Assembly (NCBI GenBank): GCA_015680685.1
Contig: MNCI01002583.1
Span: 1-64,000, forward strand
Origin: Gnetum montanum
Taxonomy: Eukaryota; Plantae; Gnetophyta
Direction: 5' to 3'
DNA length: 64,000 bases
Below, in pieces: positions 26,511-64,000 of the stretch (positions are counted from its first letter, which is position 1; each line of letters begins with the position of its first letter). Both the position numbers and the translations under genes were made by a program. Under the pieces are notes generated by a model, which saw only the letters and a program-made list of their open reading frames with translations, was not told where the DNA came from and searched no databases.

Positions 26511-26644
26511 AGAGCATGTCCCTAATTTTCTTGCCCACTTAACTTATCTCTACCTCCTTTGCCTATATAGTTTGAGTTTGCATTATGTTTTCTTCTTGCA
26601 TTAGTTACGATTTTATTTAGCTTTCTGTCTCTAAAAATAATATG

Positions 26645-37781: not shown

Positions 37782-40632
37782 TCTTCCCTACTCCTACGAG
37801 TAGGGTCAAGCATAGGGAAAACTTTAGGAATCAACAAGGGGGTGCAAAACAAAGAAAACTACTGATATTATCTATAGAGGATATGCTGGAGTAGAACTGA
37901 CCATCGCCAACTAAGTTCTAGAGCTACTGGAGATGTCTAAATGCTTCTTTACAAGTATTACACTACCTATGCTACTCAGCGTAGCGTAAACACTTACATG
38001 CTATGTTGTGTTACAGTGTGTAGCGTAGCTTAGCATAGCAGCCAATTTTGAGATAAATCTTGCCCAAAAATCAAAAATACCCCTATGAGGCCTAGCTAGA
38101 CAAGCTATCTCAAAAAATATCCATTACAATTTTCATGTTGAAGAAGATTGAGACTCCCTAGTTTCATGCCTCGGACATTTTTAGCCTCAATGTCCCTGCT
38201 ACACTGTGCTATGCTATGCAGCATAGCATAGCGTAGTAGCCAGTGTGACATGAATTCTTTCTTAATCTACAATGCTTTGTCAAGAGACTTTGATTAGGAC
38301 CCAAGGGTGAAATGGGACATGCAGTCTTGGAGGTCGGAGCATGGCCAAGGGCAATTCTTTTGTTAGAACAACTTGATAGAGGATCTTCGTGCATTTAGAC
38401 CTTGCTATGCTATGTAGTGTAGCATAGCCTAGCACCTAGTTTGGCCCGAATTTTAACTCACTTTGCAAAAATTCTATCATGGGATGTTGGTCATCTCTTG
38501 GGATGTCAGTAGAATAAGCATTTTTGATGGTCAAAGCATGGGCAATTTTGTTTCCTATGTTAAGGTAGTTTGGGAAAATGTTGTCATGTCTTACTATGCT
38601 GTGTAGCGTAGAATAGTGTAGCACCCAAAATGGGACAAATTTTGTGACATTTGCCATGTTTTTCTATGTCATGATAATCACACTTCAAGGATGAAGTGGT
38701 GCCAGCTCCTTTGAGGACTAAACATCCACCAATTGCATCTTCTAAGTCTGATCAGTCACCACAAGGCTTGCTATGCTATGCAATGTAGTGTAGCGTAGTA
38801 GGTCTCACCATTAGAAAACTTGTTGAACTATTTAGTCCATCCTAAACACCTTTGACAACTCCTAGCATGGTCCCTGGGTAGACCGTCAATCGGGTCATGT
38901 GTTAAGCTGGGCAAACTAGAGAGTGTAGCAAGCTTGTCAACCTGAGAGATAGAAAATTTGCTGAACTATATGGTCTAACTTCAATGCTCCATTTTTGCAA
39001 AATGGCTCTGCAACTAGGTGCTACGCTGACTATGGTGGGGAGTGTGGCAGCCACACTTAAACATAACCTTGTAGGCATTAGGACTTCCAAGGTGTCAGAC
39101 CATTTGTGCAGTCCATCATGGCATTACACCAAGAGAATCATGATGATCCAAAATTGATGATGTTTCACTGGTCCTTCTTTGTCGATGTCTAGAGGATCTA
39201 CCCAAGAGACGTCAACAAAGAACACAAAAGACCATGCTGAATGTGACATCCATACCATTCATTAGTGTCCACTTAGATAAACCTTTGCTATGCTTGGGAG
39301 TGCTAGGAGAGCTGAGCATGATAGGGAAAGGGGATGGATTTGAGGAAATCAAGCTAAGGGAAAGGAAAGGTGCAAGATCTGTTATCATGAGAGTCATTTC
39401 CATAGTGTGATCCCTCGTCGGAATGCTTGTGAGGGAGTTAATACACATGGGTGTCTTTCTCTTTGGATCTTGACCTATCACTGGAGTGCTTAGAGATGGT
39501 CGATCTAGAGCTAAAACAATTGCAAAGCAACTATCATGCCATTTTTTTTGGTTACTTTTCTTCCTTTTTTGTGCTTTTTTGTTTTGTGCTTTGGGTGCCT
39601 TTTTTTTTGTTGCACACCCATGTTCATTGGAAAGAAATCTTGTTGTTGCTATAGGATATGTGTTTCCTCCCTGAGATAAGTTGTGTTACATTCATGTGGG
39701 GCTTTGACCAACCTACAGAGGCTTTCCATGGGATGCATTGCATTATGTCCATCATGGGCCTAGTGGTTAGGCATGGGAGATGGCTTTATGTGCATTAGAA
39801 AAGCTTGTGAAGAAGATATAAGAAATTATAAGTATAGGGAATGGAGATTAAGTTGGCCAAAGGGAGAGTAGGATATGCACTCTAAGGTAGCTAGGCTAAT
39901 CAAAGTAGGTACTTCAAAATAATGTAGTGTCTCACTCTTGTGGTGAAAAGCATCTCTGAATGATGCCATCCTGGCTTTTATCATGCAAACACAACAAAGA
40001 GGAAAATAGAAAAAACAACCATCAAATGAAGTGAGGGAAAATTCCTATTTGCTTGGGATACTGCCAAGGTGGAAAGTGTTGTGTCTAACACACACAATAT
40101 CTAGAGTAGGAAGGCCAACGCAAGCTTTGATAATAATAGGTCAGAAAGCTTTAACGGACCTATCGGGAATGAGCACTAAAGAGGCTAGAAGCAATGATGA
40201 TGCAAGTGCTTAGGAATCCCTACCAAACACAAGCATCATGAAATCTAGATGAAAGGTGAGAAGCCTGACAACTGAATGCTTTTTTGAACTCTAACGATGG
40301 TGAGGGCTAGAGGATGGAAGCATTGTGACTAGGCCACAATAGTGTTGGGACTCCAGCAATAGGTGCTGATAATGAGAGCTATGACCAAGATGATTGGCAG
40401 TGGTAGCGGTAGCTCTGGAGGATCAGCAAGATGTCAAACGACATCTTTGGAAGATTAGGAAGATGTCAGGGATGACGACACTACATGTGTCCTAGAGGGG
40501 TTTTTCTTGGTAACATGAACTTCATTCTAGAAATGCAACATCCTAGCCCATGTTGTCTAGGAAGCTTGAATATGTGCATGCTCGCTTGTTCACAATGTCA
40601 CATGTGTGAGCTAGGAGGCGTTGCACTGTGAA

Positions 40633-40921
40633 CCCAGTTTAAGGTCTTGGTAGACCATCGAATGTGCTAGTTTAAGGTCCCAGTAGACCAATGTGCTAGT
40701 TTAAGATCCAAGCAGACCAATGTGCTAGTTTAACATCATAGTAGATGGGGGATGGCTAGTTTCAGGTCATAGCGGACCATGCTATGGATGCCAATTTTAT
40801 GTCATGGCATAAAGACATGTTGTCCCAGTTTAATGTCATAGCAAACGTTCTGTGCCAATTTTATGTCATAGCAGACAAGTTGTGCTAGTTTATAGTCATA
40901 GCAAACTATATGTACCAGTTA
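40633..40921 (-). repeat. Array of about 9 stem-loop/TAAACT units in the 3' UTR of C
   Basis: On minus: ggtc-taccaa-gacc-ttaaactg, ggtc-tactgg-gacc-ttaaacta, tgtc-tttatgccat-gaca-taaaattg. Confidence 0.9.
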
Positions 40922-43034: not shown

Positions 43035-43563
43035 CTTATTTTAACAAGCAAACAAACAAAGTCAAGTGATACCTACTTAATACGGCAACATGCAATGAAA
43101 TGCATGTAGATTAATTATGTGATGTTTAAAAAGTAGCCAATTTAAGGTCTTAGTGAACTAAAACCATGCAAAATTGTACATTGAAATTACTAGTTTAAGG
43201 TCTTATCGGACCATGATTGGGTTAAAAATGTAAAGGGAATGCTAAAATTGGTAGTTTAAGGTCGTAGCAGACCGTAACCATGCAACATTGTAAGTCAAAG
43301 TTGCCAGTTTAAGGTCGTAGCAAACTATAACTAAGCCACATTGTAAAAAAATGAAGTGAAAATTTTAGTGCATCTATGTGCTACGCTGCAGTTACATGCT
43401 ATGTTGTAGTAGATCCATGCTACACTATAGAGGATAGGAATGTCCCATGCTACATTGTAGTAGATAAGTGCATTTTGTGTCATGTGTGGGGCACGGGATG
43501 TCCCGCGTTACATGCAGGACATGGAACACCCTAGAAAATGATAGGTGTTTCAACTGCGTAGGC

Positions 43564-43571: not shown

Positions 43572-43699
43572 GGGGATTACCCATGGTAATCTTGTCACTT
43601 TCACTATCAAAGCTAACACCCAAAGCATAGCGTAGTTGAGTTGAGAGATAGCATAGCAGTCGTAGCATAGCAGTTGATACACCTAAGTTTGTTAATAGG

Positions 43700-46600
43700 A
43701 TGATGACACATAGGAGTGAATGCAGGCATTAGGGTCTTGCCAACGTAGACGAAGGGGATCATACCCTATGACGTCTCCCCAGGGTGTGCATTGAGGAACG
43801 ATAGGAGGCCCCATCCACCCAGTAAGTCACTACACTACCTTTTCTTTCATGGTGCAATTTATCAAGTGGATTTTTCACTATCGTCACTGCGTCTTGGTTG
43901 CTATGGTTGTCACTATTGCTATGCTGTGACTGTTGTTATTGCCTTGGCTATCACTTTAGCTGCTACACTATTGTTGTCACCACTCTAGCTGTAGCCACCA
44001 TGGAAATTACTATGCTATGGCTGGCATGCGGCACTACCCTAGCCACCATTGCTAGGAATGGGCAATGCACCATTGCGAGGGTTTGGGTAGCGTAGCATAC
44101 GTTCAACATAGCATAGCACCCATGGAGGGAATTTTTGTTTGCAAGGTTTTTAGGCAGCGTAGCACATGTTTAGCATAGCGTAGTGTGTGTAAGGGGAGTT
44201 TTTTTTTGTATTTTATTTTTCTACATTTCATGTAATGGGACAAGGCTAGGGCAATGGGAACGTTGTATGTTCCTTTTCGTGTTGTGTCTCATCGTGACTA
44301 ATGGGTTGTGTTACGTTTTTGACGCCTGTCATGCTATGCTGCTATGTTGCCATAACTACTATGCTGGCATAACTTCTACACTTGTTGCAGTGTTGTACTT
44401 GCTATGTTGTTATGCTTTTTACATGTCATACTTGCTATGTTGCTATGCTATGCAAGGTGTAATCTTCAAGCCATGCTATGCGTAACATAGCCGCTACTTT
44501 GTGCAAAGTGTACTTGCTATGCTACGCTGCACATAACATAGCCACTATGTTATGCAAGGCATACCTACTATGCTAATCTATGCGTAACATAACTACTACA
44601 CTATGCAGAGTGTACCTACTATGCTACTCTATGCATAGAACTTTGCTATGCTACGCGTAACAGTTTGCTACGATGCATGCAATTGCTTCGCTACATGGGA
44701 TAAGTCATGAAAATGGAACCGATACTTGGAGAAAAATTGGATTTGTCTCATCATACCAAGGACATACTATTTCATACTTCAAAAAAATTTGTACATCAGG
44801 GATTACACTATGCTATTCATTAACCATCACTTGGACACTGTACTAAGGCTTTGTGCTATGCTATGCAGGGTCATGTTGAAACATATCCTGATCGTGCTTG
44901 AGTTGGTTAGAGTTCTGTGTTTCTTGAGTGCCCCTATGGACAATGTCCCCCCTTCTCATGAACAAGTAAGAGACCAAGTGTTCTGGTTCTAGGAAGGTAC
45001 ATAGGAGTTCCTAGAGTTCCTCCTTTCCCACTTTAGTGTGATAGTGTGGTCACACTTGTTGGTCAAGACAGTTGCTATTCTTGTTGAAATGCTATTGCCT
45101 AAGGCATCTTGAAGTTTATGGATAATGGATCTATTGAAGTTGAAGGGGTAGAAGGCTCAAATCGGCACCTGAGAGGTTTAATACGCTTATCTTAGATTTT
45201 GGCCATGCCTGAATTTAAGTGCTATCATAAATACAACACATTGTTTGTTGCCCATCACATGGGTATCTTCTTTCAAAATCCACCTGGGACTATCTACTAT
45301 CTCAACAGGTGAGTCCTATGAAGATGTTTTAGACATGTTGTACCTCTTTTCTTACGTAGTCGAAATGCTTATTGTACTCTGTATGTTACTAGGTTTGTAA
45401 TTGACAAGGATGGTCTTCACGATCACAAGGGGACATTGGCATTGACCCAAACAGCCTTGCACCAATTCTCTTCTGCTGCAAACACATGCACCACCATCAT
45501 AGAACAACTAGGGGCTGATTTTAGAATGTATCCAACCAAGTACGCTAAGTTCTATGTGAAATGTCAAGAACTTGGATGGCTGGATGGCAAATGGGCATCC
45601 CATCGAGCACTTACTGTAGAAGACATTCTAGTGGAAATCCCACCATTTCCCATGTCATTCACACTTGGTGTGTTAGATTATGCACTTGTCTTTCATGTGT
45701 TCAAGTGATTGATTTTTTTTGCCTTTTGTTAATTTTTTCATTTATTATTGCAGTAGGAAGCGAATCCCAAGAAGTTACTATAATCACCTCTAGACATGAT
45801 GAAACTAGCCTCTTTTTTAAATATAGGGAGGTGGATGAGATATAACGTTGGCTATGTAATGGGGTCCCAACCATCCTTGTTCACAATGTTTAGGAGGCTG
45901 GGCTCGTGGATTTATTTTTAGCAATAATTCCAAGTGTCCCAACTACAGAAATTCTCTCCCTAGTTGATTCTTTTTCAGAAAAGGCTAACCACTTCTGCAC
46001 ATGGGTTCATAATTTGCAGGTGGTGTTCGAGATTACTGATAGCCTTTTTGTAGATCTCTTCGGTGTTCCCTCCAATGGTCTACATATAGGGGATAAGACT
46101 AGCAAGGATGTAAACCATCAAGGGGATATAGAAGAATGGCTATGGATGAGCAAAGACCAAAAAGGGATTTACATGCATAAGGTTAGGCTACAGGTAGCCC
46201 AAAAGGTTTACCCTATCTTCTAGGATCATGCCTTTCCCAAGCTACTCTCTCAAGGGAAAATTCTTAGAGTAGATTAGGCTTGGATCATGAGGGATGTTAT
46301 GGAAGAAGGGACTCACTATAATTGGGCCAACTACCTTTCCAAAGGCTTGTGTGCTGAAATGGTTAAGCTTCATGAGAAGTTTGATGCACGTTTCAATGTA
46401 CACTTCACCTTCTTCATAGTTTGCCTATGACAGTTTGTGGAATTCTTAGTGGTCTAAGATAATGGCATCTGGGTGTTGTAGGATCACACCCAGATATCCA
46501 AATTATGGATCTACCAAGTATTTCGCACCACTCGATCCCAAGACCCCCCAGAAGCTATTAGGAAGTCTCTTTCGATAACGATGAAGGACTGGGTGGGATG

Positions 46601-48450
46601 ACCCTTTTATGCACTTGAAAACAGGAAATGCCTCCCACTAACACAGGAAATGTGCTAAGGGAGGTGCATCTTATTATTGAGGTAGTGAAATCAAGGTTAC
46701 AATGCAAGAAGTCTTGTCCTGGGGAAGAGGCTCCATGCACCAGTGAAGAAAGGGGTAGAAAGTTTTGAATCAAGGTTCATAAGGTGCAACTTGCATTTGT
46801 TGGTAAGTATGTTTAATTGTTTCATTAGTTACCCCTCCCCCTTTGTGTTAGACCAACATTCTTACTTTAGATGTGTTTAATCAATGAAGAAGAAGAAGTT
46901 TTGGCCTCTAAGGTAGGGGCCCCTGCTATAGAGGAGGAAGAGACCCTGACTGCAGAGGAGGAGGTCCCAACTACAGAGGAGAAGGCCCTTGTCATAGACA
47001 AAAGGCCCTTGTTTCTAATGATCCCTTCATAGAGTGTGCCCCAGCACTTTAGGAGCATATGAAGGTCGAAGATGCCGCCACACTATTGAGTCAACTTGAG
47101 GGGAAAGGGCTACAATTTTGTGCCAATGCATTTGACCATTTTGTTAACAGTGTGCCGATGGATGATCCCCTCGCTCTCACCCCTGAGGATTTGCTGGGTA
47201 GGATCTTTGCACAATCAGTTATATTCCTTCTTAGTTTTTTCTTTCCTCCTCTTCACCATTATTACATGTTTTGTTTCATAGCAGACACCACTATTAAGGT
47301 TCCTAATTCTTCTTCTTCAATCCACCTCCAACCATGGATAAAGATCCCAAACAAATTTGCCTTTATGGAGGGGATGGTTGATGACATGATTGACTGCTTA
47401 AGGTAGATTGACCCAAAAATAGGTGTGTTTAGTGGTTTAGCACCTATCTTTTACATTATTTTGTTTGTTATTTTGTCATCTTCTCATGATTGCCAGCTTA
47501 AGTGGGACCCTAGGTAGGTAGTCAAATTTGACACTATGCCTAAACTCCCACCAGAGGTGACCAAGGTGCCTCATGATGTATACAAGGAAATAAGAAAATG
47601 TGCGCTATACTCGACACGATCATTATGGGAGTGTAGGCACATCAGTGAAGACCTCTAGAAGTAGGTCTAGAAGCTAGAGAAGGAGAAAGCTAGCCAAGCA
47701 GTCGAGTTGGAAGATCTACAGTCAAGAAATGAATTCTTATTGGCCCATGACACTTCCAACGGTAGTTGGCGCACGGCTATGGTTGATTACGCAAGATATT
47801 GGTCAACTATGCAGGGTAAAAATGAGGCCACCTGGGAAATAATTGAGAAACACTTGTAGATGGATTTACTGGCCCAGAAAAACCAAGACTAGAAAGACTA
47901 CAGCACCAAGGTATACAAATAGGGGCAAGCACAAAAAAATCATAACCACATGTACAAGGTGGAACGTGCTACCTATCATCAGAAATATCGAGATGCTTCC
48001 ATTGAATTGCATACCCATAAACTATTTCTTGATGTTATTGGTGCTACTGAGGCCTATGAAAAATTTATGTAATAGGTAGTGGTTAGTGAGTCTCTCAAAA
48101 GAAAGATGACCTTACCTTCCAGGGAGACCACTACTGCCACCTTTTCTCTAGGGCCACCTAGATGGATGGCTATGGAGAAGGGGAGAGTTGCAGCGAGCAT
48201 TGATCTCTGGGAAGAAGATTGGGAAAACTTAAATGAGGAGATTCTATGGCCTCTAGTAGCTAGCATGGACAAGATACCCCTGAGATGGATGCGGGCACAT
48301 CTCAGGTTAGCTACTCTTTATTATATCATAGTCTATTTCATGAAAGCCTTATTGTAATTCAATTCATTATTCTTTTTGTTTTATGCAGGATCCAAATGGA
48401 GGTGCGAGACCTAGTGGAGTAAGAGATGAAGATATTAGCAAAGACTTGTA
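43700..48450 (+). pseudogene. Antisense 8-exon accessory gene of C (FCP1/NIF-like domain, middle domain, coiled coil)
   Basis: GT-AG introns at 43822-44868, 45309-45392, 45668-45753, 46803-46870, 47198-47284, 47423-47496 and 48306-48388. Exon 2 reads ILIVLELVRVLCF...VFWF.EG..EFLEFLLSHFSVIVWSH...YNTLFV...FQNPPGT. Confidence 0.85.
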
Positions 48451-48931
48451 GTGTGACGGTGAAAAAAAATTTATTTTTGTTTTTCTATTTTATTTTTTGG
48501 AAGTCTTAATATATGGACTCAAATTTAATGAAGATTAAAAAGTGAAAAAATTATTTCATTTCTTTTGGTTAATGTTTTATTAATGTGCTTGGGCCCCATG
48601 TGGGCCCCTTGTTTTAGTTTAAGGCCATTTCGGGTCATTGCGATAATTTAAGGCCATTTTGGGCCCTTGCTAGTTTAAGGCCATTTTGGGCCATGCAATG
48701 TAATTTATGAATGTCAGTTGCTAGTGTTAGGCCTTAGCAGGCCATGGTGATAGTTTAAGGCCATTTCAGGCCATGGAAATAGTTTAATTGATGCAAACAA
48801 TGGTCATGATGCAAATAGTGGACATAATGCAAATAGTGAACATGAAAAATCAAAAGAAACAAGAGTATTAAGGCCAAGCATTCATGGAAGTGAATTATAC
48901 GTAGGCTCTAATTACATAATTTTTTCCTAAC

Positions 48932-49800
48932 TATACCATCCGAAATCATCGGTCTCCAGCTCGAAGGAAACAAAAACCAGGAGATCTCTGGACATGCACA
49001 GAAGACCCTACCTTCGCTTGAGGGTAAGCTAGAGTTAACGAAGGCAGAGTACCTTGAGTGGTCCGCACGCGAATCAGGCAAGGATTTCCCCAAACGTACA
49101 CCAATATGCTATACACCAAGTTATACGTGAACGACGTAACTGATGTAAAACAAAGCGTAAACAGCGTAGCTAATGTAAACTGAGTGTGAACGTACAAGAG
49201 CGTAAACAATAAACATGAAATGATTAATGAAAAATTGTAACATATTTTAGCAAAGAAATGTAGCAATATTATTGCGAGATGAGAGTTACAATGCACTAGT
49301 CTAACGCAGTTGTAACTCTGACACAAGGCGGACGAATAGCCCCGGTGGATGCAGGGATGACTGTGTACTAGGTTCAACTGGAGGCACAGCGTAAAAGCTG
49401 TATGCTCAGCGTGCAGGGCAAGGTCTAGCGTATAGGGTTTCTGCTCTATTCTCTCAGCGTCTCTTTTGTCTCTTCATCTCTGGTTTGCTCAAAATTTCGA
49501 ACCCTAATCGAATGAAAAATTGGGGTGTTTATACAGGTTTAGAAATTAGACTCGGTTTGGGCAACACGTGGCGCATTGATCGGGTGCGAAAGAATAAAAT
49601 TTTACAAGTGTACAACATGCTGCATCTACTGGGCGTATACGTTGTATCTGGTGGGCGTAGACTCTGGGTGTATACGCTGGGCGTATACTCTGGCCATGCA
49701 GGATGTATACGCTGGGCGTATACACTATACATGCTGGGTCTACTGAGCGTATACGTTGTGTCTATTGAGTGTATACGCTGGACGTACAGAATATAATACC
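48932..49800 (-). repeat. Probable 3' LTR of D (inner boundary uncertain)
   Basis: Homology of C to B stops at 48931. Minus strand ends ...GATGGTATA, probably a decayed ...TACA. TATA (CCTGTATAAACAC) near 49530 with ACACGTGGC upstream. No second copy or clear PPT is visible. Confidence 0.55.
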
Positions 49801-51384
49801 CAACGTATAGACTCCAAGATGTATGATGTCAACATTGACGATTGCTCTGTTTGTATGAGTTGATGCTTTGTGCCAAGTCTTGCTCTGCAATGCTATTTCC
49901 ATGCCATCTTCAGGGATTGCATGCCGGGTGTATACATCAGTCGTACATGCTGAGCATACTTGTGAGGCGTGTACACTGGGTGTATACACTATGGATGTGT
50001 ACGCTGGGCGTATATGCTAGGCATATACGCTGTGGATGTGTACTTGGGCGTATACACTGGGAATGTGAACTTGGACGTATATGCTGGGCGTATACGCTGA
50101 AAAAGCATACTTAGTGAAAACTAAGTATGTTGAGCTTCGAAGTTGCCATTTCTGATAGCATATGTTGTCATGGTCATCAGTGGATCCCAGGGAACTGCTC
50201 CTTGTTGAGTTTGACTCCGCTTGAAGCTGTCTGTGCGGCCCTCAAGCTTCATTCATGATGGGGAACGTCATGACTTAGCTTGACTCTTGTTTGAAAAGTA
50301 CTAAGCTCAGAATTTTGTGGTCTTTCGTTGGCCCCTCTTTGTTGACGCTTGGAGGAATCGACCTAAGAAGCATTGACAAAGAAGTGCAAAACACCATAAG
50401 CAACTCGATAGAGACTTTGTCTTTTGCCACCTGACTAGACATCATCGCACCATGTTTAGTAGCACGTGGGATTGTGGGAAATAGAAGTTGTATTTGATAG
50501 GAAAAGGGAAACTGTGGGGATTCGGGAGGAATCAAGGTTATGCATAGTGAAAAGGATGTTCTGGTGTGTATGTGGGTCATGCTGATCTTTGTCAATAGCC
50601 ATTGTTTAGCAAACTCGGAATCAAGACATGAGAGTGCATCCTTTGGCAGAACAAGACTCTTGGTTAGTATTCGAGAGGACTTGTTCATAGAACGAAAGCC
50701 ACGTGATGATGTGTTGCATTGTTTGGAGGAACAGGATCCTTGTTTAGTGTTTAAGGGGGAACCTGTTGGCGGAGAGCCAAAGCCATGCAATAAGATGTTT
50801 CTTGATTGTTTTAGACATGAGCGTTTGCTTTCGAGGCAACTTTCGTCCCGTCTTGTGTTTTATGTGGGAAGGGACGACATTTTTTTTGTGAGGAGCTTTG
50901 TTTTGATCTTGTACTCATGCTCAAGTGCTATGTTGTGTGTTGCAACTACTTAAAAATGGTGCGATATGCAACGGTATGTTCGATGTTTTGGGCTATACTA
51001 GATGTGTTCGGGATGTAACCAAGTATAAGGTGTTGAGGGATAGGCAGGATATGAAACAGGGGATGTACTAGTGAATGGTTTGATTTAGTCTTATCACATG
51101 CGCTGTAAACAACGTCTCACCTTGCTGCTTATGACGAAGTGCATTCTTGTGTGAACACCTCTGAGTGTCATCCTGCAAACACAACTCCAAGGAGACAAGA
51201 AACCCATGAGTGAGTAAGCGAGCTTAGAATTAAACCATTACTGATGAAACAAAGGCACTAGATGAGATTTCAGGCATTGTATATGAATAGCAGCAATGGC
51301 GTTAGGATCAGCCGATTGGCGAGTGATGTAGCGATTCTGATGAAGTTTGAATGCAGCCACTGATTGAGGAACCAGAGATGAAAT

Positions 51385-52015
51385 TACCAGTTTATAGCCT
51401 TAGCGAACTATCATGGGTTAGTTTTATGTCATGACCCATTGGACATTGCCCGTTTAGCGTCTTGGTGGATGGTACATTGCCAGTTTCTAGTCTTGGCGGA
51501 CCGTGAAGAGGCAAACTAGTTTATAGTCTTAGTAGACTCTAGCGAGTGGGACTATGGTAGTTTACTGTCGTGTAGGAAAGGTGCTAGTTTATTATCCTTG
51601 TGGACACTGTGTGGTATCAGTTTATCGTCATGATGCCAGCATGAGCTATGGTATCAGTTTTAAGTCATGATTCCATAACTGTGCTATGGTATCAGTTTAC
51701 CATCATGATTCCAGGACGAGTTGTGGTATCAGTTTACTGTCATGATTCCAGGATGAACTGTGGTATCAGTTTTAAGTCATGATTCCAGAACTGTGCTATG
51801 GTATCAGTTCACCGTCATGATTCAAGGATGAGCTGTGGTATCAGTTTACCATCATGATTCTAGGACGAACTATGGTATTAGTTTTAAGTCATGATTCCAG
51901 GACTATGCTATGGTATCAGTTTACCGTCATGATTCTAGGACGAGCTGTGGTATCAGTTTACCATCATGATTGCAGGATGAGCTGTGGTATTAGTTTATAG
52001 TCGTGATGCCAGGAC
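51385..52015 (-). repeat. Stem-loop/TAAACT array after the pol stop of D, including 11 tandem 37-38-bp units (51612-52015)
   Basis: Unit TGGTATCAGTTTACCGTCATGATTCCAGGACGAGCTG and variants. About 7 more divergent units at 51385-51610. Confidence 0.93.
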
Positions 52016-52037
52016 TCGCACGTACCTGAGCCTATAC

Positions 52038-55000
52038 TCAAATATGGAATGGTTTCAAGAACAAGTGATTGGTCGGATTTGCAAGCTCATGCCCTTCCAT
52101 ATCAACTAACTTGAATGCTTCATTGTCATATGCTTTGGTGACCAAGTAGGACCCTTCCCAATTGGCTGAGAATTTGTCCGGGTGTTCCCGAGCAGCCTTA
52201 AGTACAAGGTCGCCTTCTTTGATAGGGCGCTTATGAATGTCGTGCCGATGGAATTATCGTTGTTGCTTTTGGTACCATTCGATTTGATCGAGTGCATGTA
52301 TGCATTTCTCCTCCACCGAGTCCAAGTCAATGATGTGTAGGTGATTGTTTTATCCTTCATCGAGGAGTCTGGAAAGTGTGATCCTTAAAGACAGTACCTG
52401 TAATTCCAAGGGTAAAACAGCTTCTGAACCATAAACAAGACTATATGGCATTTTACCTATTGAAGTCCGATGCGTAGTGCGGTATGCCCACAGTGCGTAT
52501 ACCAGTTGCTTGTGCCATCTTTTCTTACTTTAGGTAAGCATATTTTTAAGTACTGTAATGATAGTTTTATTTTTGGCCTCTGCTTGCCCATTTCTCAGAG
52601 GGTAGTAAGGGGATGAAAATGAGTTTTTGATCCCCAGACTTTCGTAGAAAGTTTTGGTTTCAACACTGCTGAATTGTGGCCCAGTATCAGTGATGATGGT
52701 CATGGGGATGCCAAAATGGGTCACAATGTTTTCAAGAATGAAGTTGCATACGTGTTTAGATGTAGTTTTTCGAAGGGGAACAACTTCTACTCACTTCATG
52801 AAATACTCTGTCGCGGTTATGATGAAGCTATGCCCTACAGAAGATGAGGGTGTTATTGGTCCGATAAGGTCCAACCCCCACTTTTGAAAGGGCCATGTGA
52901 TTTGCACTGTATGCAACTCATTTGGTGGAACATGGATTAGATTACTATGTCTTTGATAGGTGCTACATGTTTTAGCCTTGGAGAGATAGTCATACTCCAT
53001 ATGTGGCCAATAATAGCCTAAGCGCCTTATTTTTGTTGCCATTGCTTTTGGTGCTATATGTCCTCTGCATAGTCTGTCATGTACTTGCTCAACGATGGTT
53101 TGAGCATCAGTGCTACTAACGCATGTTAGCAATATGCCTTCGTAGGATCGATGACACAAGGTGTCCCCTACCAATGCATATTTCTTAGAACGCTTTTGTA
53201 CCGCGTATTTTTGTGCATTCGTTAAGTGTTGCGGTGTTTCACCGCGTAGGAGGTACTCTTTTATGTCATCATACCATTCTGTCGTGTGTGTTGTACTAAC
53301 ATATGAAATTGGCAATGTATCAAGCGTATCGGTTATGGGTTTCGCATAGTTGATTATGGAGCTTGGCAATGTATAGAACATGCCGGGCGATATGTTTAAC
53401 GCTAGAGTGGCTAGTGCATCTGCAATGGTATTATCGTTTCTGGAGACATGTTGCACGTCTATGTTTTAGAATTGCCTCATTAAGTGTTTGGCTAAGTCAC
53501 AGTATGGTTGTAAATGTTGCGCTTTGCATGTATAAATACTTGTGACTTGGTTCAAAAGCAGTTGTGAATCTCCTCTGACCACTAGTCGTGTGATGTATGA
53601 AGCTAGTGCTGCCACGAGACCTCTAAGGAGACCTTTGTACTCTGCTACGTTATTGGTACAGTGAAAGTTGAAACAATAAGCAAAGGGTCGGATCTCTCCG
53701 GAGGGATAGGTGATGACGGCGGTAGCACTTCCCCCTCAAGAGGTGGATGCTTCATCAAAGTTCAAAATAGCATCGTAGTCATTGGGTACCATGTCTATCA
53801 CACTCACATTTTAATCAGAGAACTCTGGCTCTATCATTGCTTGATCATGTGTTGGTGACACAGTCATTTGATTCGCTATGGCCTAACCCTTAACTGATGA
53901 ATGTGCTATGTAGTGTAGGTCAAACTCAGCTATCATAGCTTTCCAACAGGCTATTCTACTTGATTTGTAAATATTTCTGGTGATGGCTCTGAGCACATTA
54001 TCCTTGCAAATTATGTTAACTTGATTATGGAAGAGATAATGTCGCCATTTTTTTAGAGAGAAGACCAGGGCTAGACATGACCTCTCCACCTTGTTATATT
54101 TCTTCTCATGGGCTACTAATGCATGGGTTAAGTAGTAGACAGGGACTTCGGTTCCATCATCTTGTTTCTGGCAAAGCATGAATGCGATTGACGAATCTGA
54201 AGTGATGAGGTAGATGAAAAATGGTTTACCATTTTGAGGTTGATAAACCGTGGGTAGTTGAATGAGTGCTGCTTTAATATTATCAAATGCTTCCTAGCAC
54301 TATGGAGTCCATTCAAAATGAACATTCTTGCGTAGCAAGTGGTTCATAGGTTTCAGCTTGTCTGTTAGTTTTTCTATGAAACATCTGATGAACTGCAATC
54401 TACCTTGTAGACCTCGAAGTTCAGTAATGGGTGGTTTTAAGTTTGTTATGGTCTTAACTTTATCGGGATCTACTCATATCCCTACTTCTTAGGCTATGAA
54501 TCTAAGCATTTTTCCTATCTTGACTTCGAAGATGCATTTCTTTGGATTAAGTCTCAGCTCATATTTTAAACAATGCTTTAGTACTAGGTCAAGATCTTGT
54601 ACATGTTGTTCTGATGTCTTTGATTTAACCACAATGTCGTCCATGTACTCGTTGAGCGAGTGCAACATGTAATCGCTAAAAATGAATGTCATCACCCTTT
54701 GATATGTGGCCCCAGCATTCTTAAGACCGAAGGGCATGATTGTGTAACAAAAGGTTCCCCATGGTGTCATAAAGGTGGTTCGGAGATGATGCTCCGGGTT
54801 AATGCGTATCTGATTGTATCCTGAGAAGCCATCCATAAAAGATAATAGGGCATGCCCAGTGGTTGAGTCAACAAGTTGATCGATGCTAGGTAGGAGAAAA
54901 TCATCTTTTATGGTTGCAACGTTGAGATCCCGGAAATCAATGCATAAGCGAATACTTCCATTCTTTTTCGGGACAATGACCATGTTGGATACCCAATCGG

Positions 55001-55519
55001 CGTAATCAACAGCCTGAATGAAACCAGCCTGATAAAGTTTGGTGATCTCATTACAAACTGCCAATGCTACCTCAGGTTTAACCTTTCATGCCTTTTGTTT
55101 TACTGACCTCAGTTTTGGATCAAGGATAATGTTGTGCTGGACGATTTGAGGATCTATCCCGGGCATGTCGGTGTAAGACCAAGCGAATGATTTCATGTTG
55201 TTTTGAAGCACATCTTCTATGTCTTTGGGTAGTGGAGGTTGCAAGAGTGTACTTAATTTTAATATTTTGGTTTTACCATTAGGCATAATGATGGGAGTTT
55301 CAGTCAATGGGTCTTCAATGATGTTTTCAGCTTCTATATCAAGGGGCTTTATCATACCTTTGTAGCTATCTAGCGTTTGTTGCATTGAGGCTATGAGTGT
55401 GTCTTCCGTTGATGTACCTAAGTTGATGGAGTTTATGTCGATTTCTCTTGTGATTTTTCCATATGGTCCATCGATGATTAATGGTGCGGATAAATGCTGA
55501 AAATCCATCGGGCTTGCTC
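52038..55519 (-). pseudogene. pol: pol of element D: RT (about 55200-54400), RNase H (about 54230-53880), aRH (about 53760-53390), integrase (about 53290-52038)
   Basis: WVSNMVIVPKKNGSIRLCIDFRDLN, FMDGFSGYNQI, MPFGLKNAGATYQR, YMDD. HDRLCRGH, WPFQKWGLDLIGP, TDTGPQF, NGQAEA. Confidence 0.95.
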
Positions 55520-58500
55520 CTACCAATAAACAGAGAGCAGAATGAGCTAATAGGTATTGTTCCATGTTCTTTGGCAACGTAAATCATGTGCACACGCATG
55601 ATGGTGGTTTATCATCACACTAGGATGCATGGTAGTTTAAGGCCTTACCGGGCCATGGGTGGTAGTTTAAGGCCTTATTGGGCCTTCATGGCAGTTTAAG
55701 GTCATGCCGGGCCGAAGGTGGGCTGCATGTGGCATTTAAGGCCTTATCGAGTCATGATGGTAGTTTAAGGCCATATTGGGCCTTCATGGAAGTTTAAGGC
55801 CATACTGGGTCTCTATAGCATACAGCATAGATGGTTTTAACTATATATAGCATAAATTGTTTTGTCAGTGCATAGCGCAAACAATTTTACCAGTACATGG
55901 CGTAAACGATTTTATTAGTATGAAACCTAGAAGATTTTCACAGTGTATACGCTGACTGTTTTCACAACATATACGCTGATGGTTTCCACAGCATATACGC
56001 TGATGGTTTCCACGGCGTATACGCTAACTATTTTTACAGCGTACAGCGTAAACTATTTTCATAGCGTACAACATAAACTATTTCCATAGTGTTCAGCATA
56101 AACTGTTTGCACAGTGTTCAGCTTAGACAATTTTCTTTACAGCATATACACTGATGGTTTCCATGGCATATACACTGATGATTTTCACATCGTATACACT
56201 GAGCGTAAACAGTTTGTTCTTTTTAGGCGGTGTATAGTGTAGACCTGTTTTCATGGCGTAAACAGTTTTCACAACGTATACGCTAACGGATTTTTACAAC
56301 ATATATGCTGAGCGTGAATAGTTTTATTTCTCTTTTAAACAGCGTATACGCTGAGTGTTTTCAGTCTGTTGATGGCGTATAAAACCAGTGTAAATAGTTT
56401 GTTGTTTTTTGAAGTGTTGGCCTGCAAAATGAAATTTCGTTCGTTCATCTGATTTTCATGTATGGCTGATTTATCGTGGCTTTCTGGTTAGTTGTAGGGA
56501 CACTGAGCCTATCCTCCTGGTAGTTGAGCTAGTTGGGGTGTTGGTGTGGTTTGGCGCCCTTGAGACTGATGAACCTACCCCTGATCTGACTGTTGAAAAC
56601 AATGGGGTATGGTTCAGGGAAGGGGCGTGTGAATTCCTCGCCTTCATCTTGGACAGATTTAAGGTGGTGGTCTGGTCGCATCTGAGCGAACAAGTGGCAT
56701 GGAGCGTGCTGAGGCTATGTTTCTGGGAGCTTTGGAGGACGTCGCGGTCTTCATGGAAGACATTGATGAGGGCTCGCTTGTGATCGAGGATGGTCCCACT
56801 GGTGAGCCCAAATCTACTCGCTCATTAGCACGCCTGTGGGCCCTGTTGCCCTGAGGATGTGATTATCTCAACAACACTTTATTTCTAGCTATACGTGCAC
56901 ACACACTATTCCAGAATCCTCCTGGTACAGTGTACCAGGTAGAGAGGTAATATTTTTTTTAGCTTGTCGTTTCTATCTCTCTTTTTTGTTGTTTAATGTT
57001 TGTCCTTGTTTTGACGATGGTTCTTTTGCAGGCCCCAAGTTAACCAAGAGGGGACATGCGTTAATGATGATGGGCTTGCCCTCGCTCATACTACTCTAGA
57101 GACCTTTATGGCAGGTCCCACCCTTCACGAAGCTGTATTGGCTCAAACCAAGGGTGATATTGTACATTTTCATAAATTATTTTCTAGAGCATTCGCACAA
57201 TGCATAGCTCATGAATGGTTGCATGAAGATTGGTCACATAATGGACCAATTTTCCCTCATGACTCTGACTTGGGTAGCACCTCTAAGTCCACAACTAAAG
57301 GTAAGTGACAACATTTTCTAAATTCTTTAGTTTGTTTATCTGACTGCTGGGGGTTATACTGATGTGACGGTTTCAAATTGTATCTGCAGTTGATGTCCCT
57401 CCCGGCGGAGACCCTATCACAACAGGATGAACTAAGAGTACGCTCTCAATGAAGTTCGGGGAGATCAGTAAGGCATAGAAATGGTTGTGCACCCATGCCC
57501 CGCTGTCCATTGTTCGTTGTTTAGATGATGACGGCCTTATGGAGCTCTTTACAACCCTGAGCCCTGATGTGTCGATAGCCGAAATGATCGGAATTGTTGA
57601 ATCATTCGACAAATCCATCTCTTACTACAACACTCGGATTAAGGGTGTTAAGATAGTCTTCCATCTGTCAGCCGANTTGGTTTTGAAGTTGTGTGCATCA
57701 TGCGAACCATCTTAGAAATGGGGATGCATTATAATTGGGCTCAATTTTTGTTGCCAGGCCTTCATAAGGAGATAGTGCGATTGCGCTCAAATGTTGAGGT
57801 GCAATCCCATTTTACATTTACATTCTTTGCTGGCTACCTTCTACGCTTGGCCGAGTTTCTAGTGGTTTGCACAGACAATAAATATATCCTACGGGATCGT
57901 ACTCAGTTGTCTCATTCGTGGATCAACCATTTGTTTGAGATAGCTGAGTCCCAAGATGCTCCTGAGGGGATTGATGAGTCAGTGTCCATCACGATGGGAT
58001 GGTCATCTGGTACCTCAATCCACACACGTGACAGTGTGGGGTTGGAACTAGATGACATGCCTTATACTACCAAGAGAGCCAAATGTGTCATCAAAGAGAT
58101 AATTGGGAAAGCCAAGTCAAAGCTCTCAAAATGTGAACGCTCAACGGAGGTGGCCTCAAATGTGGAAGAGCCACGAGTGAAGCGCATACAGTTCAAGATG
58201 CCTATCCGAGGTAAGTAGACTTGGTGCACTTATTGCATTGTCCTTTTCGTCTTATTCATAATTTTCATTTTGACCGCTTACATGTAACTAATGCCTTCAG
58301 ACTTAACTCGCGAAGTGAGGAGACAAGAGTTAGAGACCATCATCGAGGAGGAGGAGACTACAATGGAGTTGATAATCGAGGAAGAAGAGGTGGACAAAGA
58401 TCAGGCGGAAGGGACGGAAGAGCTAGGAGAAGACACCACGGAGACGGAACTGGTTGATGATTAGGGTAGTGTTGATGAAATGTTCAGTAGCTTCCTTAAA

Positions 58501-60543
58501 GGAAGATTGGACCTAGGAGAGCCTCCAAACCCGTAAGGGGTCAGAGAAGACGGTATGTTTCCTTTTGTTTTATTGTGTTGCTTTGTGAATAGTTGTCTTC
58601 TATGGTGTTTTACTTTTATTTTTTTATCCCTCCCAGACGAAGGTAGGATAATTCCTACTATGCGGTTGGAAGTGCCCATGAAGGTGGTTCCCCCTGAAAT
58701 GCCCCCTGAGGCTAGTCCACCTCGTACTTGTAGACCATTTTCTTGGATAGAGATGCCAAGTAAAATGGATTTCATTACCGGCATCGTCGACGAGGTGGTC
58801 GAACATATTCAGGAAGCCCACCCTGAGATAGGTACAAATGTTTCGAGTCTTTGGTGGCTTTAGAATTTCACAGCCCTTTTTGTTATCTAATGTTTAATGC
58901 CCGTTCTTTTTGTGTGCATAGGTGCCAAGTTGAAGTGGGACCCATTTCAGACCATTAGCATTGAAAGTTTGCCTACACTGCCCCCAGAAGTTGAACAGGT
59001 ACCCAGGCCGCTCTATGAGGAGGTGGCGGAAGGTCTTGTACATAACGCCAAAGTGTTGTGGACCTGTAGGCATTCCATCAAACAGTTCTAGTTGCAAATC
59101 CAAGCAAAGGAGAAAGAAGTTTCTGAGTTATCGGTTGAGCGTGATGATCACAAGGCTCGTTATGAGTTTGCCTCAGCTAGACTAATAGGCGATCATTCTT
59201 GGCGAACCTCTGTGATTACTTATACTAGGTATTGGAACCTACTCAATCGCCATGCATCACTAACTTGGAAACTAGCAGAGCGTAAGGCCCAAGTAGACCT
59301 ACTAAACCTCAAGTGCCAGGACTGGAAGGCTTTCGCTTCCAAGGTGCGTAAGTGGGGTCAGGATGAGAAGAACCACAAGCACCATTACAAGAAATCGTTG
59401 AAAGAAGTGTCGATTGAAAAGCGTTAGCTTGAAATGTTTGTGGAGGGTCTAGGTCTACGCTCTATGTTTGATACCTTTGCTCAGAATATAATTGTTGAGA
59501 TGGAATCACCTACAAGGGTAATTACAACCGCTTCTTGGGAGGTTTTTGTGGGTGAATTCCCTTTAAAGCGTCCTACCTGGTCGGCTGCTAACAAGGGGAA
59601 GGCCTTGGCAGATGTTGATCTAGGCCTTGATGGGACTGATTGGGCTAGTGTCTCAGAAGAGGAAATCCTCTGCCGATTGGAATTTAGTTTAGGGGGATCC
59701 CCTACGGTAAGTGTTTTGTTATCATGAAATTCGTTCATTGAATAATGTTTGAAGGTTTTCTCTTTTATCCTTATGTTGATTCTTTCTTTTGCATTTTATA
59801 GGATCAAGGCAATGATGATGTTCAGGAAGCTAGCCCCAGTGGAGGGGGGGGCTCATGATGCTAGTGGTTCTAAAGGGGACAATCCTCCTGCCCCTGATGT
59901 TTAATCTTTTCTTTGTAATTATTCTGGCTCACATTCTTACGTGAATTGTAAATTGAATGATTTGAGTTATATTGAACGGATGAATAAAATCAGTTAACTC
60001 TTGTAATTGTACATCATCACTACATGTATATATATTTTTTACTTATATATATTATTTTTTGTTGTGGATTTTGGGTTTGAATGTAAACACGACATGGAAA
60101 TATAAAATGTTTTGGTTTGTTTTTGTAGTTTAAGTGTAGCGCACAAATGTAATTATAAGTAGGAGTGTAATTATAAGTGAAAGATAATTGCAAAAAAGGA
60201 CAACATAATAATGCAAGTGTAAATTCGAACAGTGAACTGGAACTTGGGAGGAAAATAAAGTATAAGTGGATGATCTAGTTTAAGGCCATTTTGGGCCACA
60301 TGCACTAGTTTAAGGCCATCTCGGGCCATGCGTAAACAAGAGAAATTTCAAGTGACATGGGTTGATTTCTTAGGAGACCGATCATTTCTGATTATGGCTA
60401 GTTTTATGTCGTTGCGGACATGATAGTTTAACGTCATTTCAGACAGGGAGGATAGTTTAACATTGTTCCGGACCTTGGCTAGTTTAATGTCATTTCGGAG
60501 AATTTGTGGTTTATTGGTTTAGTAATTTTTTGATTTTTCTCAT
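55520..60543 (-). other. Candidate 5.0-kb PR-RT intron of element D
   Basis: Acceptor TCTCTGTTTATTGGTAG| at 55520. The position equivalent to the B donor reads CAAA|ATGAGA, possibly a decayed AG|GTGAGA. Arrays at 55632-55812 and 60275-60500. Frame compatibility is not established. Confidence 0.55.
56498..59904 (+). pseudogene. Antisense multi-exon accessory gene of D (best preserved copy): FCP1/NIF-like pseudophosphatase domain, middle domain, acidic linker, coiled coil
   Basis: Canonical GT-AG introns at 56947-57031, 57301-57389, 58211-58300, 58553-58636, 58832-58921 and 59707-59801, at the same positions as in C. Reads PILLVVELVGVLVWF...GVWFREGACEFLAFILDRFKVVVWSH...NNTLFL...FQNPPGT. The first exon was not located. 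Confidence 0.85.
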
Positions 60544-63500
60544 TTTGATGTTAGGAGTAGCGTTAGTGGGTATGATTTTATATTCAACGTCCCCTTCGTT
60601 AATCACGTTGAATGGTAATTCAGCCTAAGGGATATCTGATGGAATTATTCTTGCGTTGGTGTTTTCTTGCGCTTCAGCGTGTACTGTGGTTTCTGTGTTA
60701 GTTGTGGTTTCTGAGTGAGGCTGTGTATGTATGATTTCAGGCCCGGGTGTTTCTGTTTTGGGTAGATTTCCCTTTGTGTCTACAAGATTATCACCTACTG
60801 GTTGTTGTTCATTTATATCATGTTGTTTAGGCTCTTTGAGCTTAACCTCCGAGCCTTGGTCTGTATCTATGAATGAGGAGATGATGGGTGTAGCAGCCTC
60901 CCCATGTATAATGATTTCGCCACCTTCATAAGCCAGGTGAATTTCTTGGTGTATAGGGGAAGAGACTGCTTTCAGTTGAGCTAACCAGGGCCTTCCCAAG
61001 ATTAGGTTAAACCCTATCATTTCATCAATTACCACAAAGTCGGCAGATGTGGGGAATTGATCCCCTGCTATGAAGTCTAAAGTCACAGTGCCTTTGACTA
61101 TCATGCGTGACCCACTGAACGATTTCAAGCATGTGGTGGCAATTGGTCTGATTAGCTCTGTGAGCTCCAGTTGTTCGACGATGGGATATGGCACTACATT
61201 TGTGGCAACTCCATCATCTACATGGACCCTATGTATCTTGAATTGGTTTACTCATATTGTTATGAACATTGGGGCTGTTGTTACCTCTCCTTTTTTCTCA
61301 TCCAACTTGATGTTGTCATTATGAAAACTTGATGGCTTGGAAGTTGACCTTTGTGACGAGTACATTACCGCATGAATTGAAGGTTCATTTCGAGGCAAGT
61401 CCTCGCTTACTGGGATAGATGTTAACATGTGCACTAAAGCTTCGAAATGGGTTTGAGATGTCAGCACTAGGTCGTATAAGCTCAGTGAAGTGTTTTTTTG
61501 TTTGAGTGCCTGCGTGACCTATGTTAGAGCTGTTGCTAGATCTCTACTGTTGGGCGTATGTTTGTCGACAGTGAATTGGTCCATTGGGCCCAACAGTTTT
61601 ATTTTGTGCATCGTTGGTTTGTCATTTTTTCTCAGAACTAGTGATTTAGATGTATCATGTTTTCTGGATGATTCTCCCTCATGGCCTGTGTTTGATTTAT
61701 CGTTAGGTGGTGTCATGGATGTTGCGTTTAGCGGGGTAGGTTTAGGAGGTCCTACGGCTATCCGTTGATGCTCCTTTTCCAAGCGTTCGCATGTAAGCTT
61801 ATCTGCTAAGCATTCTCGTGTGTGGCATGGGGGTGCAGTTAGTTTCAGAGCCTCAGGCTATTTTGGGATTCGTACTACGTATGGAGTTGGGTGGGGTTTT
61901 GGTTGGACGGTTGCATGCGGTTGAGTGCCAGGCTGGCTGGGCACCTTGATGACATAAAGGCTAGGTTTATTGTGTGTTTGAGAAATGGAGGATTGGTGAT
62001 CACTAGGATGTTTAGGTGTCCTAATAATGTATGGAGTTGGCCTAGCTAGAGGTTGTACCTCCACTGTTGCGACAGCAGGTGGTACTCGAACTACGTAGGG
62101 AGTTGGTCGCGTAGGAGGTGTTGGTATGTTTACGGTAGTAGCGGTGGGAGGTACACGCACCACGTATGGTTTTTCACATGTCGGGTGTTAGAAGTTGCTA
62201 CGGTGGGGCGTACTCAGACAACATAAGGCTTCTGCGGTGAATATGAAGACTGAGGCACCGATGTTTGTATAGTGGGAGGAATACACACTACAAATGGTTT
62301 TTTAGGCGTTTTCTACTCATGGTCAGAATAGACGGTGTTAATGCTAGGTGTTTTAGGTTTGTTATCAAGGTAGATTGTGTTGATCATGTATGGTGCCTCC
62401 TTGGTATTTAGAGGATCTTTGTACACACCCATGGCCTGGTTTTGTGGTTGGACCGGGTTGGCTTCATCAAAGGTGATCTGACCTCCATCAATCATTCGTT
62501 GGATGTCTTGTTTTAGGGTGAAACAACAATCTGTGCCATGCCCGTTATGTTGGTGATAGTTGCAGAAATGATTCATTCTAAAGCCTTCTGACACTGGGGG
62601 CTCATCTGGCATTGCTAGGCTTGGGTTCTGAACTAGTTGACAGAACTGATCATGCCTCTGGATTGCTGCAGGGGACAACTATTTATGTTTCATTAATCCA
62701 GCCTTCAAGAGTTGGTCAAACAGCTGTGATGGTTTCATGGGTAGTGGTGTGNCTGCTTTGTTGTCCCACATGTGCTAGTTGTGTTTCCGCTACCGCCACT
62801 ATAGTTGTTTTAACTTTTTCTTTGTCTTTTTTACTATGTTGATNCTGCTTTGTTGTCCCACATGTGCTAGTTGTGTTTCCACTACCACCACTATAGTTGT
62901 TTTAACTTTTTCTTTGTCTTTTTTACTATGTTGATTCTTAAAAGCTGAATATGCAGGATCATGGCTATTTTTTGCTTCCTCCTCTATGTTCTTTATTTGT
63001 ATAAATGCTTGACTCAGCGTGCACACATTGAGATAGTATAGCTTGGATTTGAAANTCCTCCTCTATGTTCTTTATTTGTATAAATGCTTGACTCAGCGTG
63101 CACACATTGAGATAGTATAGCTTGGATTTGAAAAAATCATTAACAGCCTCTTTTAGGATGGTGAGGAGATACGTCTCTGGGATCGGCTCATGGAGCTCAT
63201 TGGGAGCAGCACTCCACCGTTGGATAAATTTTTGGATAGGTTCAAGTGGTGCTTGTTTGACCTATATGAGGCTATCTAGCATTGCTTCGGGCTTCAAGTT
63301 ATACGTGAATATGGTGATGAATTGGTGCAAAAAATCTTCTAGAGAAGATATTGAGTTCCGTGGTAAGGCCCGATACCAATCAAGTGCTCTCCCAGCGAGG
63401 GACATGGGGAACACTCGTAAAATGACATGTGGCCATGCCTGAAGTAGTGCGCACTCTAGTATGAACGTTATGAGGTGAGCGTTGGGGTCTATCTCCCTGT

Positions 63501-64000
63501 TATATTTAGTAAGCATGGGTAAAGAAATGCCCTTGGGTAATGTTAGGGGCGGAACCAAAGAGCTGATAGGGTCATCATGATAGAAGTCCACTACCTTCAG
63601 TTCTCCGTCGGGGGATGTTTTGAGGCATTTGACCTCATCGGTTAGCTCCTACATGAGTTTTTTAGTGTCAGCCTAGTCTTGGGCACTAGGTGAGATAGCA
63701 GATTGGGGGTGTTGTACAGTATACATGTTAGATTTTTGGGCAGTGGGTTGGAAGGTAGAAAGTTGTGTGGTCAAAGGTTGTACTTGCGGGATATTTATAG
63801 CGGATGGTACTAGGGGTAGTACATTGTAGGCGAGGGGTTGCTGTTACTGTGGTTGTCCTTGAGGGATGTTGGCCGGTGGAATTGTGTGAGGTGGTATGTT
63901 ATAGTAAGGGGGTTGATGTGATTTAGCACCAATTGTTGTCCATTGCATGATCATATTTTGTGTAGGAATCCCCTGAACTTATTGGGTTACAGCGGTGAAA
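60544..64000 (-). pseudogene. gag: gag-protease of element D (5' end off-window)
   Basis: FPMSLAGRALDWYRALPRNSISSLEDFLHQF. FCNYHQHNGHGTDCC nucleocapsid. HVDDGVATNVVP...LILGRPWL protease. Confidence 0.93.

Follow-up and report, generated by a model that had tools for sequence, protein, structure and literature searches.

Retrotransposons with long terminal repeats (LTRs) are considered to carry genes with introns only in exceptional cases, introns being lost when spliced RNA is copied. In plant LTR retrotransposons, extra open reading frames (ORFs) are placed upstream or downstream of gag-pol, and the intron of Ogre elements measures only about 274 bp (PMC6317226, PMC7264820, PMC11963269, PMC4408406); it is the region separating the two Ogre coding blocks and is spliced from part of the transcripts (PMC6317226, PMC4408406). 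An additional archaeal-type RNase H (aRH) characterises the Tat clade, and in its Ogre and Retand subclades the aRH stands between RNase H (RH) and integrase (INT) (PMC6317226). PMD-type extra ORFs of Tat elements occupy either the 3' end, in antisense, or the 5' end, in sense (PMC4408406), and the antisense gene of Grande has a promoter of its own, from which it is transcribed, and a nuclear protein as its product (PMC7264820, PMC11963269). Here, a 64,000-nucleotide stretch of Gnetum montanum DNA is described (contig MNCI01002583.1 of assembly GCA_015680685.1, positions 1 to 64,000 of the forward strand, referred to throughout as the window), in which three Tat-like elements, named B, C and D, carry a multi-exon gene antisense to pol in the interval between protease (PR or PROT) and reverse transcriptase (RT). 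An initial sequence-only reading of this DNA had not recognised the layout from any described element, and full-text searches of the literature on retrotransposons likewise brought up no account of a gene located in the PROT-RT interval.

Results

A seven-exon gene antisense to pol

B, C and D are quite likely to be decayed copies of three diverged families of a single Ty3/gypsy Tat lineage, in which an antisense accessory gene has been inherited within the PR-RT spacer. Every stop-free piece of the D spacer was compared by tblastn with the whole window, and collinear matches were obtained only in the C and B spacers, antisense to pol (expectation value, E, down to 1e-35). The coding spans opposite to pol extend over 56505-59858 (+) in D, 44879-48451 (+) in C and 30654-27120 (-) in B and comprise at least seven coding exons, amounting to about 940-1030 codons or 2.8-3.1 kb of coding sequence, which bears out the opposite-strand, multi-exon gene that had been proposed for the three spacers.

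Intron positions were established from a three-way MAFFT alignment and a junction-by-junction check, and six introns were found at identical alignment positions and phases in B, C and D (phases 2, 1, 1, 1, 1 and, for the last, most likely 2). All splice sites conform to GT-AG in D (12/12) and in C (12/12), so that the claim of short introns shared by these divergent copies holds for 6/6 introns in each; B has mutations in three donors and two acceptors, including a change from GT to AT at two of these donors. The introns are 67-99 nucleotides (nt) long with 63-84% A+T and 37-58% T, against 44-63% A+T in the exons, and in D alone the corresponding A+T values are 63-74% and 44-56%. Exon lengths are kept across the three copies (269/275/277, 195/141/138, 785/809/821 and 57/63/61 nt), and open runs of 30/91, 186/53 and 98/55 codons span unbroken junctions in D. 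Exon 3 of D lacks about 270 nt that are kept in B and C, a stretch that includes the best-conserved motif. Identity of exons and introns in global alignments did not discriminate between the two, since segments that are short and AT-rich reach about 60% in such alignments in either case. A TATA box had been noted as common to B and C; a TATA-like element does occupy one alignment column, but it is best in D (TATAAAA), reads TTATAAG in B and is degenerate in C.

Constraint and joint divergence

Ratios of non-synonymous to synonymous substitution rates (dN/dS), which had been suggested as a check across copies, are unreliable here because dS is saturated, and the proportions of non-synonymous and synonymous differences (pN and pS) and identities by codon position were used in their place. 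For the antisense gene of C and B, pN lies well below pS (0.29 vs 0.74). Identities at codon positions 1/2/3 are 0.63/0.74/0.45 for the antisense gene between C and B, 0.53/0.67/0.35 between D and C, and 0.68/0.80/0.53 for pol between C and B, so that the pattern of the gene resembles that of pol; the antisense gene evolves faster than pol. In the comparisons with D, 461 and 363 codons could be aligned on the antisense strand, against 81 and 81 on the pol strand of that DNA. Both the gene (dN 0.37 vs 0.54-0.60) and pol DNA (68.9% vs 64-66%) place B and C closest to each other. Three families that are about 65% identical have the same gene in the same place, orientation and exon structure, which rules out independent insertions and therefore places the gene in their common ancestor, under selection during divergence. 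The antisense gene is thus supported as an integral part of the lineage, as opposed to a secondary insertion, because it has diverged jointly with the element under purifying selection.

Organisation of the elements

The window consists of plant DNA made up of nested, decayed Ty3/gypsy elements, with no ORF longer than 224 codons. D, on the minus strand, has the order gag, protease, spacer, RT, RNase H, extra RNase H and integrase (Table 1). Its protease contains DDG and GRPWL motifs by eye, homology between the D and B proteases stops near D 60838, and pol homology is absent in D between the protease and 55583. B, on the plus strand, has the same order, with gag from about 23812, protease at 25631-26353 (a piece of which matches gag-asp_proteas in Pfam, E=0.009) and with RT starting at about 32962. 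In C, which lies on the minus strand, there are RT, RNase H, extra RNase H (41632-41225, RVT_3, E=7.2e-6) and integrase, and no gag or protease was found within the window. The break in pol homology from protease to RT, which had been claimed for all three, is therefore present in B and D, where the protease-RT spacer measures 5.3-6.3 kb, but can be seen only from the RT side in C. The C spacer ends at a breakpoint near 48931, beside the apparent 3' end of D, and 48931-52040 probably belongs to that 3' end; the DNA there carries the D family motif described below. The Tat-clade order GAG-PROT-RT-RH-INT is present in D and B, and the additional aRH in D and C (RVT_3), where its place between RNase H and integrase gives an arrangement of the Ogre/Retand type. 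The RT is at most 59% identical to any entry of the protein collection searched.

B and C stand tail to tail (36836-37676), B being without a 3' LTR, and identity between the presumed 5' LTR of B (about 20500-21600) and the presumed 3' LTR of C (38975-37676) is only 71-77%. Directly downstream of the D integrase is a tandem repeat with a period of 37/112 nt (51610-52016). Inside D gag there are two near-perfect two-copy duplications of 92 and 79 nt (62753-63133), which may be assembly artefacts because they adjoin N bases at 62752, 62844 and 63055.

Splice signals on the pol strand

A U-rich tract followed by AG occurs where pol coding similarity resumes in B, C and D; it ends in GTAG in both D and B, and in TAAG in C. 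The acceptor positions given in the sequence-only reading (D 55520, B 32572/32573 and C 43036/43035) were exact, corresponding to the last intron or first exon base. An in-frame ATG lies 11 nt past the acceptor in D (55508-55506) and 13 nt past it in B (32586-32588), and the acceptor is probably real. The donors proposed with it fared unevenly: D 60543 is not a GT, while B 26489 is a good match (CAG/GTTAGG), although one that lies past the B stop codon. A candidate donor, GAG/GT, stands at the exact end of the B-D protease homology, and an alternative in D, GTAG/GTGATA (60794-60793), would join in frame and has no B counterpart.

Motif arrays at the gene and in the presumed LTRs

The 12-mer GCGTATACRCTG, specific to the D family, was counted in the window with one mismatch allowed and gave 23 matches against 0.08 expected by chance, all of them in two clusters. 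In the C family a different motif, TGCTATGCTAYGC, gave 32 matches against 2.4 expected. Both motifs are almost confined to two places per family, namely the region upstream of the antisense gene and the presumed 3' LTR. A further kind of array is made of hairpins, with units of about 29 nt that read on the pol strand GGCC, a gap of 5-7 nt, GGCC and then TTAAACT. These GGCC-hairpin arrays are found at both spacer edges and again after integrase in B, C and D, and since they are present after integrase too they are not insertion termini.

The predicted antisense protein

Exon pieces were searched singly. The only Pfam signal among about 40 pieces was that of D exon 1 to NIF (PF03031; E=7.2e-4, 19.7 bits vs a cut-off of 21.8, profile positions 3-72 of 160); the B and C pieces gave no Pfam match to NIF, and no NIF match was found against PDB sequences, where searches with exon pieces returned nothing relevant. 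By eye, exon 1 of B and C also follows the NIF pattern, and the catalytic motif DxDx(T/V) is replaced by VELVG in D, LELVR in C and VKLMG in B; if the fold is NIF-like, the exon 1 domain would be inactive. The AlphaFold 2 model set against NIF is all-helical and of low confidence. The two AlphaFold models obtained have a predicted local distance difference test (pLDDT) score of 69.6 with a predicted template modelling (pTM) score of 0.36, and a pLDDT of 47.7, both low. A language-model comparison (Atlas) gives one piece of C exon 3 a similarity of 0.90 to DUF1985 clusters and of 0.84 to a PMD cluster, and a conserved motif in this region recalls PMD and DUF1985. No profile hidden Markov model (HMM) match to PMD (PF10536) or DUF1985 (PF09331) was found in the approximately 40 short exon pieces, nor any support in the PDB, a negative that carries little weight because stops shorten the pieces. 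A word-index search with the D protease, limited by length, returned no homologue.

Table 1. Positions in the window of the features of elements B, C and D
Feature	Position	Strand	Remarks
D gag, decayed pieces	62316..63648	-	tblastn to B gag, 41-57% identity; weak Retrotrans_gag match, E=0.002
D protease and C-terminal tail of gag-PR ORF	60628..61500	-	51-53% amino acid identity to B 25631-26353
D pol, total	52533..55583	-	Pfam
D pre-RT ORF	55583-55089	-	
D RT	55085-54492	-	RVT_1, E=3.7e-27
D RNase H	54293-53886	-	RT_RNaseH_2, E=1.1e-23
D extra RNase H	53735-53469	-	RVT_3, E=1.2e-11; between RT_RNaseH and Integrase_H2C2
D integrase	53465-52533	-	Integrase_H2C2, E=6.9e-8; rve, E=3.8e-9
D antisense exon 1	56505..56946	+	Conserved part; start codon not assigned
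D antisense exon 2	57032..57300	+	
D antisense exon 3	57390..58210	+	Most conserved part; N at 57676
D antisense exon 4	58301..58552	+	Acidic stretch
D antisense exon 5	58637..58831	+	
D antisense exon 6	58922..59706	+	Two in-frame stops; 38-41% identical to C and B
D antisense exon 7	59802..59858	+	Stop 59857-59859, or 59901-59903 in B/C-matching frame
D antisense introns	56947-57031 (a, phase 2), 57301-57389, 58211-58300, 58553-58636, 58832-58921, 59707-59801	+	GT..AG
C antisense introns	45309-45392, 45668-45753, 46804-46870, 47198-47281, 47423-47496, 48306-48388	+	6/6 GT-AG
B antisense introns	30206-30128, 29850-29772, 28718-28632, 28412-28314, 28175-28100, 27278-27181	-	
TATA-like TATAAAA, upstream of D antisense gene	56377-56383		
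AATAAA, downstream of D antisense gene stop	59975..59980	+	Read from sequence
GCGTATACRCTG array, directly upstream of D antisense gene	55941-56353		12/23 matches
GCGTATACRCTG second cluster, presumed 3' terminal region/LTR of D	49633-50099		11/23 matches; D 5' LTR outside window
TGCTATGCTAYGC array, upstream of C antisense gene	43646-44866		16 matches
TGCTATGCTAYGC cluster, presumed C 3' LTR	38023-38786		10 matches
GGCC-hairpin arrays	55616-55815, 60270-60500 (D protease-side edge), 48615-48790, 43100-43270, 26642-26880, 36261-36336, 40661-40737		
Sense 3' splice-site-like signal, D	55520..55523	-	Last putative intron base 55520
Sense 3' splice-site-like signal, B	32569-32572	+	Last putative intron base 32572
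Sense 3' splice-site-like signal, C	43039-43036	-	Last putative intron base 43036
Candidate sense 5' splice site GAG/GT	60845..60846	-	Exact end of B-D protease homology; B 26291-26292; by alignment and by eye

Other elements in the window

Two further elements were delimited. Element A (gypsy, minus strand) has LTRs at 1402-2224 and 13793-14616 that are 84% identical, and its protease (10958-10659) directly adjoins RT (from 10284). A copy of the A LTR with about 240 bp of leader, 74-75% identical, stands in opposite orientation at 19437-20475. Element E has a protease at 17854-17270 on the minus strand, followed by a spacer that is interrupted by A (17270-14617 and 1401-1), and the E spacer showed no similarity, significant or collinear, to the gene that B, C and D carry in antisense.

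Discussion

The data point to a lineage in which the gag-protease block is split from the RT-RNase H-integrase block by a spacer of 5.3-6.3 kb holding an inherited accessory gene on the opposite strand. The introns of such a gene would be reverse-complemented in the genomic RNA, hence unspliceable before reverse transcription, and would persist; that they survive in this way had been argued in the sequence-only reading and follows from the orientation of the gene. Pol would be expressed from an RNA spliced at the conserved 3' splice site, which lies 11-13 nt upstream of the pol ATG, either by Ogre-like removal of the whole spacer or from a subgenomic mRNA. The encoded protein could be a nuclear regulatory factor, perhaps a DNA binder of the DUF1985/PMD-like kind whose N-terminal domain is NIF-like and inactive, and it might act on the motif arrays common to its own upstream region and the LTR.

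Several observations weigh against this interpretation. A complete element is absent from the window, the 5' LTR of D lying outside it, B having no 3' LTR and C no gag-protease, and all three copies of the antisense gene are pseudogenes with stops and frameshifts. The GAG/GT donor conserved between B and D lies in phase 0 and out of frame with the RT ORF, and the offset from the acceptor to the RT frame differs between the two elements. The domain calls are weak, since NIF lies below its cut-off, DUF1985/PMD comes from language-model similarity only and both structural models are of low confidence. Relatives of the gene were also lacking: a phmmer search of 1.84 billion representatives with D exon 3 returned nothing but a false match to a low-complexity repeat protein (P0001), a word-index search with C exon 3, limited by length, gave no homologue, and no relative of the antisense gene was found in the metagenome contigs and viral contigs scanned.

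The frame discrepancies bear on how pol is expressed, and an alternative with a substantial, if less than even, chance of being correct is that the spacer is not a PR-RT fusion intron of the Ogre type. Pol would then have its own start codon and be translated separately, from a subgenomic RNA joining a leader donor to the conserved acceptor (as in foamy-virus pol or retroviral env), from a transcript started in the spacer, or by reinitiation. The in-frame ATG close behind the acceptor in D and B is what this predicts, the short segment between acceptor and ATG differs in phase between B and D as would be expected of a non-coding leader, and use of the GAG/GT donor would end gag-PR 8-13 codons past the junction, overlapping the pol ATG; the pol ORF and the antisense gene, which point away from each other, also have a motif array between them. 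However, the ATG is not conserved in C, the D donor at 60794 would give an in-frame fusion, small indels in such decayed copies could have shifted the phases, and Ogre, the closest relative with data, fuses its ORFs by splicing (PMC6317226, PMC4408406).

Other alternatives deny the gene a place in the lineage altogether. Nested insertion is common in the window, where A lies inside another element and D apparently inside C, and the protease of the related gypsy element A adjoins RT, so the spacer content might be another mobile element or a captured fragment of a host gene. This is nevertheless highly improbable, given that three families about 65% identical have the gene, collinear, in the same place and orientation, with a divergence that tracks that of pol, that the hairpin arrays at the spacer edges recur after integrase and are not termini, and that A belongs to a distant lineage with an RT only 39% identical. 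The elements could instead be a dead end, rearranged non-autonomous derivatives with pol split by foreign DNA and amplified in trans by helpers, the antisense gene having no role in the life cycle. Every copy seen is defective and non-autonomous Tat/Retand families are known (PMC11963269), but such an origin is unlikely in view of the codon-position pattern and a pN well below pS, which indicate long selection on the protein while the families diverged, of the splice sites and phases kept in C and D, and of the similar constraint on gag-PR and pol in the same copies. A gene integral to the lineage thus remains the preferred reading.

What the protein of this inherited gene might do is suggested by transposons of another class. 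VANC, a DUF1985 protein of VANDAL DNA transposons, binds family-specific short motifs, which form tandem repeats in non-coding regions of its own element and differ from one related family to the next (PMC5735166), and the PMD-C fold resembles DUF1985, PMD-A proteins being encoded by retrotransposons (bioRxiv 10.1101/2024.09.27.615353). A VANC-like function is proposed because the motif arrays resemble the VANC targets in VANDAL transposons, and since PMD-type extra ORFs are known in Tat elements it is plausible, by analogy, that the antisense protein represents a relocated and elaborated version of them. In its most specific form the proposal would have a seven-exon gene, with its own promoter in a spliceable pol spacer, encode a DNA-binding anti-silencing or transcription factor in which a DUF1985/PMD-like fold is combined with a dead NIF module, perhaps binding the carboxy-terminal domain of RNA polymerase II, and which recognises co-evolving motif arrays in the LTR and upstream region as the retrotransposon counterpart of VANC; taken as a whole, this is speculative and rather doubtful.

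A selected seven-exon gene antisense inside pol, if true, would mean that these elements can stably carry a full eukaryotic-style gene, and that pol tolerates, and probably splices across, a spacer exceeding the Ogre intron in length by a factor of about 20. Such elements would be missed or split by annotation pipelines that require contiguous PROT-RT, which matters for large plant genomes. The arrays common to the LTR and the gene upstream region provide a testable hypothesis, by analogy with VANC, of self-recognition or anti-silencing by a protein encoded by a retrotransposon.

Among known systems, the antisense genes of deltaretroviruses, such as HBZ of human T-cell leukaemia virus type 1 (HTLV-1), which have their own promoter, are alike in being antisense genes of a reverse-transcribing element. 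HBZ also exists in a spliced form, the intron of which is retained in the provirus. It differs in its position at the 3' end and LTR, its single intron, its animal retrovirus host element and the lack of any sequence relation; antisense retroviral genes have been reviewed (PMC7264820). VANC shares with the present gene the family-specific motif arrays, found here upstream of the gene and in the presumed LTR, but belongs to another class of element, and the gene described here has no HMM-level DUF1985/PMD match, binding and anti-silencing being hypothetical in its case.

Retand, Grande and RIRE2 (Tat lineage VI) are closer, with antisense accessory genes in a Tat element that are conserved across families. 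Their ORFs lie between pol and the 3' LTR, usually encode Transposase_28 and are described as single ORFs, whereas the present gene is placed within pol, in the interval from protease to RT, contains six introns and shows no match to Transposase_28. Nor was Transposase_28 matched by any of ten ORF pieces taken from beyond integrase on its downstream side in B, C and D, a weak negative because the copies are decayed. The nearest parallel is Ogre (Tat lineage IV, in legumes and other dicots), which likewise keeps a gag-protease ORF apart from an RT-RNase H-integrase ORF and has a second RNase H between RNase H and integrase, a large size and tandem repeats in its non-coding parts. The extra ORF of Ogre (PMD and coiled coil, in 57% of elements) is in sense orientation upstream of gag, whereas the gene here is antisense in pol; the Ogre spacer averages 274 bp and contains no gene, whereas the spacer described here extends over 5.3-6.3 kb and houses a seven-exon antisense gene.

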